In this document: one piece after another, positions 49,599 to 63,818 of the stretch
Layout of the letters: each line of letters opens with the position of its first letter
Position numbering within the stretch: position 1 is the first letter of the stretch
Assembly (NCBI GenBank): GCA_964035545.1
Contig: OZ037773.1
Coordinates: 3,811,751-3,875,750, forward strand
Direction of reading: 5' to 3'
Source: Bugula neritina
Lineage: Eukaryota; Animalia; Bryozoa
Length of the DNA stretch: 64,000 nt
Position numbers and translations under genes: made by a program
The notes under the pieces: model-generated
The model's input: the letters and a program-made list of their open reading frames with translations, nothing else
Databases searched by the model: none
Told to the model about the DNA's origin: nothing

Positions 49599-52302
49599 TT
49601 ATTTTTTCTTCATTTTTTGTCTTGGATGACTACATTCAGCTTCATGATCATCAGTGATGTCTTCATCGGTAGAGTTGAAAGGGCACAGGTCTCTCGCACA
49701 CCATACAATGTTACACAACTGGTTGTTACATAAGGATTGGCTTCGAAGGACTGTTCCTCCACAAGGACACTGCTTATGGTACTTGGTGAATCTCTTAGCT
49801 GACTTGGCCGGTACCGTAATGGCCACACCAGATCCCGAAGCTGACTCTGAACATTGAGAGAGACTTGTTGCTGAGGAAGCGTCTGAAAACTCAGAAGTTT
49901 CAGCTGATTGAGTGGAGGTTGCAGCTGCAGCGGGTTTTGCCGCTGTTGAGGCAGATTTGCCTTTTGATTTAGCAGGTTGGTTTGCTGCAGGTGCAGGTTT
50001 ACTTGCTGCAGGTGCAGGTTTGTTTGCTGCAGGTGGAGGTTTGTTTGCTGCAGGTGCAGGCTTTTTCACTGCAGGTTTTTTTGCTGCAGGTGCAGGTGCT
50101 GTATACTCAACAGATGCGAGCCTAATTAGATTATGCACAGCCAACTCATGCTTGATGATTTCACTCTCGATGATAGTGAAGAATGAGCAGTTTGCACGGC
50201 ACCACTTTATCTTGCATATCGGGTTACCGCATATCGGATGGGTATAGGAGCTTCTTTTGTGACCACAAAGACAAAGCGGTGGAGATTTGTAAATTAGTTT
50301 AATCATCTGCTTTGCTGGCGCAGCTGGCAAAGCTGGCGCAGCTGGCGCAGCTGGCGCAGCTGGCGCAGCTGGCAAAGCTGGCGCAGCTGGCAAAGCTGGG
50401 GTTGCTGGTGCAACTGGCGCAGCTGGTGTCGCTGGCAAAGCTGGGGTTGCTGGTGTCGCTGGTGCCGCTGGCAAAGCTGGGGTTGCTGATGCACCTGGGG
50501 TTGCTGGTACAGCTGGGGTTGCTGATGCACCTGGGGTTGCTGGTCCAAGTCGGATTGCTAGTGTAATTGGTTTGGCTGGTGTGGCTGGCGATGATGCAGC
50601 TTGAGCTGGAACTGGTGCAGCTTTAAGCAAAAACTTATGTTGTCGAGCGCCTGACGAGGGAGGTGGTGTGTATGTCAATAGAAGTGGTAGTTTCATTACT
50701 ACAGGGGAAACATTGGGGTTAGGTGTGGTAGGTGATGTAGAAGTAGCAGGCGGTGTAGATGCAACAGCTCTGACATGGGTAGAATGCTTTTTAGCACCGG
50801 TTTCTTTTAGGATAAATGAATTTGGAGGTATAGTCAACAGAGTTTCCTAAAGTTTATAGACTGTTTGAAATCATGCATAGAAAAAGTGGGCTCCTGAGAG
50901 TAAAAATTTTGTATAGATGCAAAGTTTTGATATTATCACATTACCTAATAAGGATATGAAAAAGTAAAAGGTGAACTGCAGATCTATTCCAGTTCAGACC
51001 TCGGTTGTCAAAATTCATACCGCATGTGCAAACTTACCCATCCATACAGTGGCATAGTAAATATCCAATCATCTATTGGTACAACCGTATTGCCATGAAT
51101 AAATTTTTTTGTTGCAAAATATTTGGTCACCAGGTCCATGAAGGGCTCAATCCTTTCCCTTTTGTTATGGAGCACAAAATAGTTCACTACTGACTGAGCC
51201 AGTTCCATAAACTGTGTGAAATTATAACAAAGTTTTGATTGGCATCGTTGTTTGCTTGCATCTATAATGGGGCACTTACAATTATAAGTTTTTCAACATT
51301 TATTCATAGCATAGCCATATTTTGTAAGAATATTTAAAACAAGTATGTCCCAACTGTATTCAATTGTGCTATGAAATTTTTTTTGATATTTGTGAAACTT
51401 CCTGAGACTTGTTCTGTTTCTAGCAAATGTAGTCTTATTGGGAAAAAATTATTATATTTTTGGAAAGAACTGTATATACCTCTACGATAACCCCCCAAAA
51501 TATTCCACTGGCAAAGATTTTCCTAGCTGCCTCGTCTAACTCTAGTAGCAGAGATTCTGGTTGTGCTTTCACTATGGCATTTGCTCCAGCCCGAACATTT
51601 CCAAGGTTCATGTTTTTGACTACAGATACCAACACATTTAACTACATACAACAACATAGCTAACTACAGATACCAATAAAACCAAACATTTGGTAAGTTG
51701 GGTAAGTGTTGCTGGTTCATCAAACATAAAGGTAAAACTTTCAATCTAAGAAATTAAGCCAGCAGCATAAAATTAGCCATGCCACATATATTTGAGCATA
51801 TAATATAACAAAACGCTATGCAAGGCTAAAAGCGCTATAGCTAGTAACTGCTGATCACAACCGCCTATCATAACTGCTTACCACAACCGCCAATCATAAC
51901 TGCTTACCACAACCGCCTATCATAACTGCTTACCACAACCGCCAATCATAACTGCTTACCACAACCGCCTATCATAACTGCTGATCACAACCGCCTATCA
52001 TAACTGCTCACCACAACCGCCTATCATAACTGCTCACCACAACCGCCTATCATAACTGCTCACCACAACCGCCTATCATAACTGCTGACCACAACCGCCT
52101 ATCATAACTGCTTACCACAACTACCTATCATAACTGCTTACCACAACCGCTTATCATAACTGCTTTCCACAACCGCCTATCATAACTGCTTACCACAGGT
52201 TTCAATATGCACGGCTAGTGGTAGATGCTTTGACAGCTTTACTGGAGGTACCTGCTTTTTGATAAACGAGTTTACTTCACTTTGTTTTCCATGATGTCGC
52301 AT
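49599..52302 (-). CDS. Divergent Bcl-2-fold protein C, fused to a Pro/Ala linker and two Cys/His modules; 5' exons uncertain
   Basis: BH1-like 'AARKIFASGIFWGVIVE|FMELA' (exon ending 51480), BH2-like 'DDWIFTMPLYGW|' (exon 51038-51211), then phase-0 splice to 50846-49599. Candidate 5' exons at 52252-52302 and ~51680-51745. Confidence 0.6.
51843..52197. repeat. 26-bp intronic minisatellite ACCACAACCGCCTATCATAACTGCTT
   Basis: About 13 tandem copies. Confidence 0.95.
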
Positions 52303-53561
52303 GCTGAAAAGTTAAACAAACCATTTCACATCTATCAGTATTCCCACATTTAGTTTGTTGAGGATTATAAGATAAAAATTCAAATGCCATATTCATACAT
52401 GATTAGATTTTGGTCTAAATGTCTCTTTGATCGTATGCACTAAATTACGAAAAATGATATTATATTACTACAGCTAAGAAATTTAAGCTTTTAAAGCAAC
52501 AGTTTTAAAGTTGAAAAACCCTACCTACTTCAGTGGAACAAATTAGACAAGCAGTTGCAAAATAGGCTATGCTGTAAATATTTAATTGCATTTTACAAAT
52601 ACGCGTAATAGCATGTGCCAAAGACCATTTAATTTCCAGATTGTTAACTGATCAAAGTTGCTCTGGGTTTTTCACAACTAAAACTTCAGCAAATTTGTTT
52701 CAATGTAAGCAACCTGAATTTTTGCAAAAAATGAAGGAATTCATAAATTTACCCATAAACTATGTAGGTTAAGAGAGCATCTCTTGAATTAAGGTACTCT
52801 TTAGCAGCCATAACACTGTTCCTACGACAACTTAATTCCTAATCATAGACAATAACAGCGCTCAGCGCTGGGTTAATTAGGGTAGCGAAAATGATCTGAC
52901 ATTTTGATTTTTTATTTTAGTTATTATTGCCTTGTGTTTAGGAAACCATACAAAAATGTCAAACTTTTACTGAAAATTGCTTCCAAGTTTTGCAGCTTGG
53001 AGAAAAAATTAGTATAACAGCTTTATTCTAAAAGTTTTTTGCTAAGTTGCTAAAAATCAGTTTGAGCTTTTATAGGATGAAGTTTATATATGTATATAGA
53101 TAGCTTTAGTATTTTAGGATTATGTTGAGTAAAAGTCAAATTGGAAATTTAAAAGTTGTTTTACTTAAACGCGTCTATAATACATGTCAAGCATTTTCTT
53201 GCCGTTTTTTTTCAATTAGTAAAGCTTTTATAAAATAGCAAATTTGACAGTATCTTTTTAAACAAGTGTACTCTGCATGATCAGCTGATTTGCCTTGGAA
53301 CAACATAAACTTCCAGAAGTTACATTATTTCAAAACATGGTCTTATACATTCTATTGAGCACATGCAATTTTTAAAGTTAGTAAGCTACACGTTTGCTGT
53401 TAAAGCATTGTTCATTTTTATGAGTCAAATTGCAAAGGAGTTGCACTATTATATATGTAGTTGATTTTATTTAACAAATACAGCTACAAACTGAATGATC
53501 CTCTGGCCCAAAGATTTATTATTTTATTTTTTATAAGTTGGGAACTTATTTCATTGAATAA

Positions 53562-62000: not shown

Positions 62001-63818
62001 TAATAAATAACAATGTTTCTCGTATACCTATTTATAATTAAATTGCTAACTCGTAAAGATATATTTATATATATATATATATATATATATATTATTACTT
62101 TTCATACTGCTGAAGTATGCTATCATTATAAGCAATCATTAGCATTTTGTGTGGTAAAATGTGATGTTTATGTTCGATGTCAATGCTAATGTTTTTTTGC
62201 TCTTCATGGCACAGTATAGTGCTACCACTTTGCTGCTATAATACTGTATTACATATAACAGTGTAAAACCAGAATTTTAGATACTGATAGCAAAACTTGC
62301 ACCTTTTGTGACAATGATACTATTTTAATGTCATTTGAATACAATTTACTACTCTGATAACTCTTAGTTTTAGGTTTAAATTATAATTACATTCCTAAAC
62401 TTTAATTACAAATGTTACATTCTCTTGTGTCATAAAAATTTGATTCAATTTAAAATAATTATATGTTTGATCATGGGGATATAAAACAAACAATAAACAA
62501 TACGAATCACAATTTATATTTTCAATAAACTACTTCGAGCTCTTACGTTGATATTCAAGTTGTAGAATTTAAAGGTAACTGTAACAATAAAGACACTGGG
62601 AAAAGCCAGTGTTCTGAATTTGAAATGTCACTAAAAAATTATGTTCTTGGAAAAGTTTCAATCCGAAGTTAAATGATTAGGACTGTATCAATTTCTCTAC
62701 TATTACCGTTCAGCTGCCAATAACAGAGCTACTTTAAAGTAAATAAACAATTCATTTGAACATTTGAACTGTTGACTCACAATGGCTACTGTTGTCCAAC
62801 TAATTCTATGATCTTCCAGGAAACTCCCGGCAATGTTTGTTATCTGAGCCTGTAACTGATTTTCTGAGAGCCTGCAAGCCTCTCTAGTAAATTGATTGAG
62901 AAATGAGAAATCTTCATTCTTTAGCTGTCTAAGCACTGAATAAAAGCATTTAATAGTTATTTTAAATAAATTCGAACAACAATTTCTCACAAATAAAATT
63001 TAACCACTTTTAGCAATAACTTTTAATTTTAATTTTTTAATTTTAATTTTTACTCCATCAACTTTTCATTGCTAAAAAGTTGATAGATTGTTTAAAATAT
63101 TGATTTCAATCACTAAAATGCTTAAAACTGAGTAAAGCTATAAAGAACAATTCTCTTTTAAAAACAAAATTGAAGATAGATAATTCTTTGTGCAGTTGAC
63201 TCGGAAAAAACCTATTATTTTTCCTCGTCACAACAAAAACATTCTGAAAAAGTAATGATATTATTTACCATTGCAAAAATGTAATAGCTTTTAATTTTTT
63301 TCTTGCCATAAATTATTAACGGACATATAACGGAGGTTGCACTTGCCTATTCTATCCATTGCTATAATAACTGGAATATGTGTTTTATTGAGGAGCTCAT
63401 CAACATCTATTCCCAGTAAATCTGCCAACTCTTCCTTCATTTGCAAATACTGTGATTTGGTATAAAATTGTCTTTCAGCACTATGATAAAATTACACACA
63501 TTTATACCATATATAAACAATATATATACGATATACAAACAATATACAAACAAAATATAAACAATATAATATATACAATATATAAACAATATATATACAA
63601 TATATAAACAATATATAAGCAATATATAAACAATATATAAGCATTATATAAGCACTATATATACGATGTATAAACAATATATATATAATATATATATTAT
63701 ATATTATATATGATGAATAGCATGAATAGTATAGCTAAAGGTATCTCAGTTTAGATATAATATATACATACCCATATGCAACATAACTTCTGAAGATATC
63801 ACTTGATGTTGGAATCAT
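59014..63818 (-). CDS. Divergent Bcl-2-fold protein A (5 exons, ~207 aa, no TM anchor, one GC-AG intron)
   Basis: Exons 63772-63818, 63347-63480, 62781-62935, 59707-59868, 59014-59139. The first two exons have the same lengths (47, 134) as in paralog B. BH1-like '[16 protein letters not shown]', BH2-like '[10 protein letters not shown]|AGL'. Confidence 0.7.
60821..61690 (+). pseudogene. Penelope RT C-terminus + GIY-YIG endonuclease (N-terminally truncated)
   Basis: Open frame from the inversion junction to TAG 61690. Confidence 0.88.
61938..61981 (+). ncRNA. Minimal hammerhead ribozyme motif in the Penelope pLTR (second copy on - strand at ~60119-60162)
   Basis: CTGAAGA - stem II GGGTAC/AGTG/GTACCC - GAAA - TATC; minimal type I hammerheads are an established feature of PLE terminal repeats. 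Confidence 0.7.

Follow-up and report, generated by a model that had tools for sequence, protein, structure and literature searches.

The stretch of DNA considered here comprises 64,000 nucleotides (nt) of chromosome 9 of the bryozoan Bugula neritina (OZ037773.1, 3,811,751-3,875,750) and is hereafter called the window, to whose positions all exon coordinates refer. On its minus strand lie three intact five-exon genes, A, B, and C, which, together with a fourth gene, D, just beyond the window, probably represent a far-diverged branch of the Bcl-2 family. The genes were searched exon by exon, with open reading frames (ORFs) taken from the three-frame translation of the minus strand, exon ends set from splice signals in the DNA, and coding lengths obtained by summing the exons. 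All 15 exons of A, B, and C are open and every splice site is plausible; the coding sequences of A (624 nt, 207 codons), B (618 nt, 205 codons), and C (1731 nt, 576 codons) are divisible by three, and the guanine-cytosine (GC) content of the exons exceeds that of the introns. The three genes have intron phases 2, 1, 0, and 0 in common. The third intron lies five codons past a conserved Trp, and the fourth immediately past a second conserved Trp; both positions had been picked out in a first-pass annotation of the same DNA, and they hold, as phase-0 GT donors follow WTTVAI, WSVFSG, and WGVIVE at 62781, 55691, and 51480, and KDAW, HNFW, and LYGW at 59707, 55003, and 51038, respectively. All other donors are GT as well, except that of intron 2 of A.

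In gene A, exon 1 (63772-63818; 47 nt) opens with the ATG, encodes MIPTSSD at its start, and ends at a phase-2 donor, in length and phase like its counterparts in B and D. Exon 2 (63347-63480; 134 nt) ends at a phase-1 donor and leads into a GC-AG intron (G/GCAAGT, the slash marking the border), for which a weak alternative GT donor of the same phase lies 15 nt downstream. Exon 3 (62781-62935; 155 nt) is alpha2-alpha4-like and includes the counterpart of Bcl-2 homology (BH) motif 1, exon 4 (59707-59868; 162 nt) is alpha5-alpha7/BH2-like, and exon 5 (59014-59139) encodes a soluble tail whose stop codon is homologous in position to that of the D transcript. Gene B is built likewise: exon 1 (57713-57759; 47 nt, MIPNSAD, phase-2 donor), exon 2 (56747-56880; 134 nt, phase-1 GT donor), exon 3 (55691-55839; 149 nt), exon 4 (55003-55173; 171 nt), the acceptor of which was picked by homology, an in-frame alternative 45 nt upstream being possible, and exon 5 (54157-54273), whose soluble tail closes with DYVPFLDIMGD and a stop codon.

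In gene C, the first-pass annotation had missed the first exon (52753-52811; 59 nt), which was found by seeking an ATG exon with a phase-2 donor and which completes the set of five. It is followed by exon 2 (52194-52303; 110 nt, phase-1 donor TGTG/GTAAGC), exon 3 (51480-51619; 140 nt), exon 4 (51038-51211; 174 nt), and a long exon 5 (49599-50846) of 415 codons that encodes a Pro/Ala-rich spacer, two Cys/His modules, and a basic end before the stop codon.

Gene D and the sibling lineage

What had been taken for a cluster of three has a fourth member. Exon 4 of A weakly matches a plus-strand ORF 4.7 kb past the end of the window, and this ORF belongs to gene D (locus L037, 685-5425, plus strand; chromosome 9, 3,876,435-3,881,175). 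The exons of D measure 47, 134, 155, 165, and 132 nt, and its intron phases are those of A, B, and C. D and A stand head-to-head with 867 bp from ATG to ATG, an arrangement that suggests a shared bidirectional promoter. Exon by exon, A, B, and D are only 20-36% identical, yet their exon 1 (47 nt) and exon 2 (134 nt) are of identical length, and all three share the start MIPxxxD. The equal first and second exons and the homologous ends of A and B (MIPxSxD at the start, the YVPF..GD motif at the end), noted in the first-pass annotation, are thus borne out, with the exon lengths and the end motif extending to D. Single-exon and profile searches of the animal's own genome recovered only these four genes.

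Outside the assembly, the alignment profile of exon 4 (A1) was searched against 1.84 billion protein representatives and returned just two real relatives, P0006 and P0007. P0006 is a full-length spliced orthologue of D (210 residues), encoded without introns on a Logan contig of 1316 nt (L038, run SRR4020085); a word-index protein search with it gave only the self-match. P0007 is an exon-4 ORF orthologous to that of C. When L038 is aligned to genomic D with blastn, it falls into five blocks of 86-97% identity, the ends of which coincide with the exon borders of D. The junctions of D are confirmed, therefore, by RNA of a closely related Bugula lineage (the sibling lineage), and, exon sizes and phases being identical, the models of A and B gain support as well. 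Purifying selection acts on D, with a ratio of nonsynonymous to synonymous substitution rates (dN/dS) of 0.29 (Fisher p 5e-5).

C is likewise retained intact in the sibling lineage, with start codon and donors conserved. Its exon 1 is identical to the sibling contig L039 at 57 of 59 nt, with the ATG and the donor kept. An ATG within exon 2 reads ATA in L039, and exon 2 is therefore taken as internal. For exon 5, dN/dS between the lineages is 0.35. The approximately 70 bp upstream of exon 1 (52812-52880) are approximately 94% identical to the sibling contig, compared with approximately 86% for the surrounding non-coding DNA, and are likely to be the core promoter of C.

Loss of the family hallmarks

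The Bcl-2 family's signature motifs are worn down to single residues in all four genes. The NWGR of BH1 is reduced to its Trp, reading SWTT in A, MWSV in B, FWGV in C, and SWSK in D, and the GGW of BH2 is similarly reduced to DAW, NFW, YGW, and NCW. The statement of the first-pass annotation that NWGR is lost thus applies to everything beyond the Trp, with the qualification that C keeps WG in BH1, as it keeps GW in BH2. Neither the Arg of BH1 nor the Gly-Gly of BH2 is retained in any of the four genes. A possible remnant of BH3 (hydrophobic-x3-Asp-x2-Phe) is seen where exon 3 begins.

A membrane anchor is missing, again as first annotated. Kyte-Doolittle values over 19 residues stay below 1.6, the usual transmembrane threshold, in every exon of the three window genes, the highest being 1.38 in the alpha5-like start of exon 4 of A, and the terminal exons are hydrophilic, with values of 0.25-0.94 only. 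The start of exon 4 is the most hydrophobic stretch in each protein, which is consistent with its being a central alpha5 helix.

Evidence for descent from the Bcl-2 family

Four lines of evidence point to the Bcl-2 family: profile similarity, intron positions, weak matches among known structures, and bridging paralogues. For the first, profiles of exon 3 (A2) and exon 4 (A1) of the window genes were compared by hhalign with profiles of the corresponding exons (A6 and A4) of paralogues, that is, genes of the same genome that are positive for, or linked to, the Bcl-2 family model PF00452. Exon 3 matches exon 3 with a score of 26.6 (P 4.4e-6) over the final 31 columns, Trp on Trp, and exon 4 matches exon 4 nearly end to end with a score of 20.4 (P 3.2e-4). 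None of the 150 column shuffles run per test reached the observed score (maximum 16), with the same outcome when the invariant Trp columns were held in place, and crossed (exon 3 against exon 4) and reversed profiles scored 6-12. The matches persist when the target is limited to L001 and L002, two clearly canonical genes that match PF00452 at E = 6e-22 and 5e-17, respectively, with scores of 20.7 (P 4.4e-4) for exon 3 and 18.9 (P 1.2e-3) for exon 4. Taken singly, the genes give P values of 0.004-0.03 for both exons in the correct register, and the value for exon 3 of A alone, set against the exon-3 profile of the paralogues, falls to 1.5e-5. A word-index search with L001 returned two proteins only, too few for a broad canonical alignment.

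The second line is gene structure. An intron after the BH2 Trp is highly conserved across animals and is a hallmark of the Bcl-2 family (PMC8998228). A, B, C, and D all have a phase-0 GT donor immediately past the codon of this Trp, and in the paralogues the alpha5-BH2 exon ends in GGW directly before GT, most such exons beginning right at the acceptor. Moreover, in 13 of the 16 PF00452-linked paralogues, the exon upstream of the GGW exon ends five codons past a Trp at a phase-0 GT donor. The whole arrangement, a phase-0 intron at Trp+5 followed by an exon of approximately 45-58 codons that ends in Trp before GT, is common to the four cluster genes and these 13 paralogues; the acceptor phase of paralogue exon 3 is ambiguous.

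The other two lines come from searches among known structures and within the genome. A profile built from exon 3 of the four cluster genes, with no paralogue included, was run against 177,635 Protein Data Bank (PDB) sequences, and of the nine matches with E ≤ 10, six fall on BAX or BAK, where the alpha4-BH1 segment is aligned and the Trp residues coincide. Each of these matches is insignificant singly (E about 1), but the enrichment of BAX and BAK among the weak matches is specific. A phmmer search of the PDB with P0006 gave nothing relevant. Within a local database of 643 ORFs, the exon-4 ORFs of two gene pairs on chromosome 9 (L042 and L043) are the top three for both the window and the family profiles. 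The L042 locus (chromosome 9, 7,161,000-7,170,999) contains near-identical exon-4 ORFs at 3891-4076 and 8403-8588, with GGW kept, which suggests that a Bcl-2-like gene was recently duplicated in tandem. These two ORFs are intermediate between the cluster of the window and the family at large.

Profile matches, shared introns, BAX/BAK enrichment, and bridging paralogues together support the reading of A, B, C, and D as a lineage-specific, very divergent, and anchorless offshoot of the Bcl-2 family, much as the first-pass annotation had proposed. Its description of the cluster as hidden is true in a relative sense only, as Ensembl has annotated this assembly with the help of transcripts (PMC11480708).

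Weighing the evidence

We consider it likely that A-D are a real four-gene cluster of Bcl-2 descent, extremely diverged and soluble, whose products probably no longer use the canonical BH3-groove mechanism. A number of results weigh against this interpretation, some of them touching the family relationship and others the gene models. No exon of A, B, or C, nor full-length P0006, matches PF00452 at E ≤ 10, and an exon-wise Pfam scan yielded noise only (DNA_pol_P_Exo and others, below cut-off). Genome-wide, PF00452 has 29 exon matches, and a hidden Markov model (HMM) built from exon 4 of 16 paralogues has 37, with none in the window in either case. The exon-4 profile retrieves no Bcl-2 chain from the PDB. 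P0006 alone aligns to three canonical sequences with a P of 0.09 only, although the alignment, of 83 columns, passes collinearly through BH1, the Trp of alpha6, and BH2. P0006, the only natural full-length protein modelled, is predicted by AlphaFold run without an alignment to be all-helical, with ten helix segments, at a predicted local distance difference test (pLDDT) score of 45; Foldseek finds no meaningful match for this model, and the ESM Atlas gives unrelated neighbours only. Bcl-2 descent is supported, and the Bcl-2 fold assigned in the first-pass annotation is not proven. It should be noted that two ways of enriching the alignment of P0006 were set aside. Exon fragments as rows were dropped because MAFFT misplaces them at every setting tried and because such rows also carry no covariation between exons, and canonical Bcl-2 rows were rejected because they would bias the model toward the expected answer.

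As for the gene models, the junction between exons 4 and 5 of C was placed by inference and not from RNA, and dN/dS for exons 3 and 4 of C is 0.52, which is not significant because of the few sites. Neither an orthologue nor a transcript was found for A or B, whether among the 1.84 billion representatives searched or by two scans of metagenomes, so that transcript support for junctions was obtained for D (L038) and none was found for A or B.

The alternative that fares best, although we think it unlikely, is that A-D encode conventional apoptosis regulators with a remodelled groove that still binds BH3 helices or canonical partners, in the manner of soluble BAX-like or Bfk-like proteins. Descent from a BAX/BAK/BOK-type branch and the possible BH3 remnant at the start of exon 3 would suit this view, and soluble or anchorless members of the family do exist, BCL-G being a non-typical one (PMC10244440). 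It is opposed by the replacement in all four genes of the BH1 Arg, which pairs with the BH3 Asp, and of the BH2 Gly-Gly, by the missing anchor, by the extreme divergence among A-D, and by the zinc-type modules of C.

It is improbable that D is the only working gene and that at least one of A, B, and C is a young pseudogene, unexpressed or in decay, from a subfamily that was once functional. The failure to find A or B among transcripts and proteins speaks for decay, as do the non-canonical GC donor and the 2-kb inverted-repeat insertion in intron 3 of A, and the contig that covers exons 3-4 of C (L040) is unspliced. Against it stand the 15 open exons with plausible splice sites and the GC-rich exons. 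C is intact in the sibling lineage, with conserved start codon and donors and dN/dS of 0.35-0.5. In addition, exon sizes of 47 and 134 nt have been kept exactly at only 20-36% identity, which requires long-term selection; A and B are taken as real because of this conservation and because their frames and splice sites are intact.

Improbable as well is an unrelated, lineage-specific orphan family of helical proteins, in which the Trp-linked introns and the weak profile similarity would be due to coincidence or generic helix periodicity. Its strength lies in the negative outcome of every standard family test (Pfam, the genome profiles, exon 4 against the PDB, the ESM Atlas, and Foldseek) and in the absence of NWGR and GGW. 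The profile matches, however, are in register and specific to the cognate exon, and reversed profiles retain helix periodicity, yet reversed or crossed pairs score 6-12 against 20-27 for the true pairs. Nor would coincidence sit well with two intron positions and phases common to 13 of 16 paralogues, with the enrichment of BAX and BAK among weak PDB matches, or with the same top three ORFs for the window and family profiles. A viral origin, from a nearby Maverick element, is rejected, as the cluster shares spliceosomal intron positions with the paralogues of the host.

A proposed origin and mode of action

On the preferred reading, that of a Bcl-2-derived cluster, the origin of A-D would lie in the multi-exon, BAX/BAK/BOK-type branch of the family. 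Bugula neritina has greatly expanded this branch, and A-D would be its most diverged members seen, past the reach of Pfam and of the paralogue profile. Their products may keep a Bcl-2-like helical bundle, with exon 4 as the central alpha5-alpha6 hairpin, and are predicted to be soluble. The canonical membrane-bound mechanism, in which BH3 is held in the groove, has probably been abandoned because BH1 has lost its Arg and BH2 its Gly-Gly, and the proteins would probably act as cytosolic interaction modules instead.

The means of interaction would differ between the genes. In A, B, and D, it may be the conserved peptide at the C-terminus, acidic-x-Y-V-P-F-x-x-I/L-x-G-D, by which a partner could be docked or which could turn back to occupy the groove; since the peptide survives at 20-36% overall identity, it probably has a function. 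With acidic residues ahead of its F-x-x-I/L core, the peptide agrees with the generic pattern for Atg8 interaction, which is weak evidence because the pattern is so short.

In C, interaction may be mediated by two zinc-type Cys/His modules carried on a long flexible spacer. The modules (50094-50312 and 49602-49796, minus strand) each present eight conserved ligands in the pattern C-x-C-x11-C-x4-C-x4-C-x3-C-x12-H-x4/5-H/C, in which the first four ligands are Cys and the last four are spaced as in C2H2 modules. The two copies are homologous to each other (alignment score 60, versus 25.7 +/- 5.3 for shuffles) and nearly invariant between the Bugula lineages. The Pro/Ala-rich spacer of exon 5 varies in length from one lineage to the other. 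There is no other copy in the genome and no match in Pfam or the PDB; a word-index protein search with exon 5 brought up low-complexity bacterial matches only, and the AlphaFold model of the module is poor (pLDDT 48). It is conceivable, if somewhat doubtful, that the cluster has left the control of mitochondrial apoptosis and given rise to soluble signalling adaptors, with an Atg8/LC3-motif-like peptide in A, B, and D and, in C, a fusion of a Bcl-2-like bundle with an undescribed two-zinc Cys/His module.

Comparison with known Bcl-2-like proteins

The cluster resembles BAX, BAK, and BOK in that the coding sequence is divided among several exons and the BH2 Trp is directly followed by a phase-0 intron, and in the hydrophobic alpha5-like helix at the start of exon 4 of A-D. 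The alpha4-BH1 segment aligns with that of BAX and BAK with the Trp in register, these being the best family matches of the exon-3 profile in the PDB. It differs in lacking a PF00452 match, NWGR and GGW beyond the Trp, and a C-terminal transmembrane helix, and its identity to them is too low for detection by HMM.

Closer at hand is the expansion of Bcl-2-like genes in Bugula neritina itself, which counts approximately 30-40 exon-4 matches elsewhere in the genome. The cluster shares with these genes the Trp+5 and BH2-Trp introns and a similar size of exon 4, and among them, too, the anchor is often lost and tandem or head-to-head arrangements occur. In contrast, the cluster is missed genome-wide by both PF00452 and the paralogue profile, only the W of its GGW is left, a MIP..D start and a YVPF..GD end are peculiar to A, B, and D, and the Cys/His modules of C are unique.

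Anchorless proteins with a Bcl-2 fold are known among cellular proteins, such as BID and BCL2L15/Bfk, and the poxviral Bcl-2-like proteins N1, A52, B14, and K7 are soluble, have lost the canonical BH motifs, and act in innate-immune signalling rather than through the groove. Like these proteins and BCL-G, the cluster products would be soluble, with BH motifs lost and the helical bundle kept or thought to be kept; unlike them, they show no sequence or structural link to this group that could be found. The spliceosomal introns shared with host paralogues argue for a host and not a viral origin.

Animals usually carry about 2 to 11 Bcl-2 family members, in a review that does not mention bryozoans (PMC8998228), and no paper describing an expansion in Bugula neritina was found in a literature search. 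This animal carries dozens of Bcl-2-like genes, many of them without an anchor or canonical motifs. The cluster would mark the far edge of that radiation, where the sequence of the family has drifted while gene structure is kept, and C would be a divergent Bcl-2-like member joined to an unrecognised zinc-type module. Should the products indeed function in some way other than through a BH3 groove, the cell would have in them its own counterparts of the immune modulators that viruses make from Bcl-2-like proteins.

Other features of the locus

Intron 2 of C contains a minisatellite (51845-52197, minus strand; 26-nt unit, 13.6 copies, 93% matches), which begins at the exon-2 donor and is also present in L039; each unit repeats the donor-like GTAAGC. 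Intron 3 of A is interrupted by an insertion of approximately 2 kb (60058-62043). Its long arms are inverted, with complementarity of 99% over 517 nt and 93% over 224 nt, and an ORF with a GIY-YIG-like motif (..Y.GET.RRL..R..EH) occurs in it twice, the copies being inverted. This ORF has no Pfam match at E ≤ 0.01, and the insertion is possibly the remnant of a Penelope-like element.

The label cGLR that the first-pass annotation had given to neighbouring genes is not confirmed, as Pfam sees ankyrin repeats only. On the plus strand, three large paralogous exons (12942-14663, 37332-39041, and 42715-44388) encode ankyrin repeats followed by a nucleotidyltransferase-like motif, GS..G..DEFDFS.

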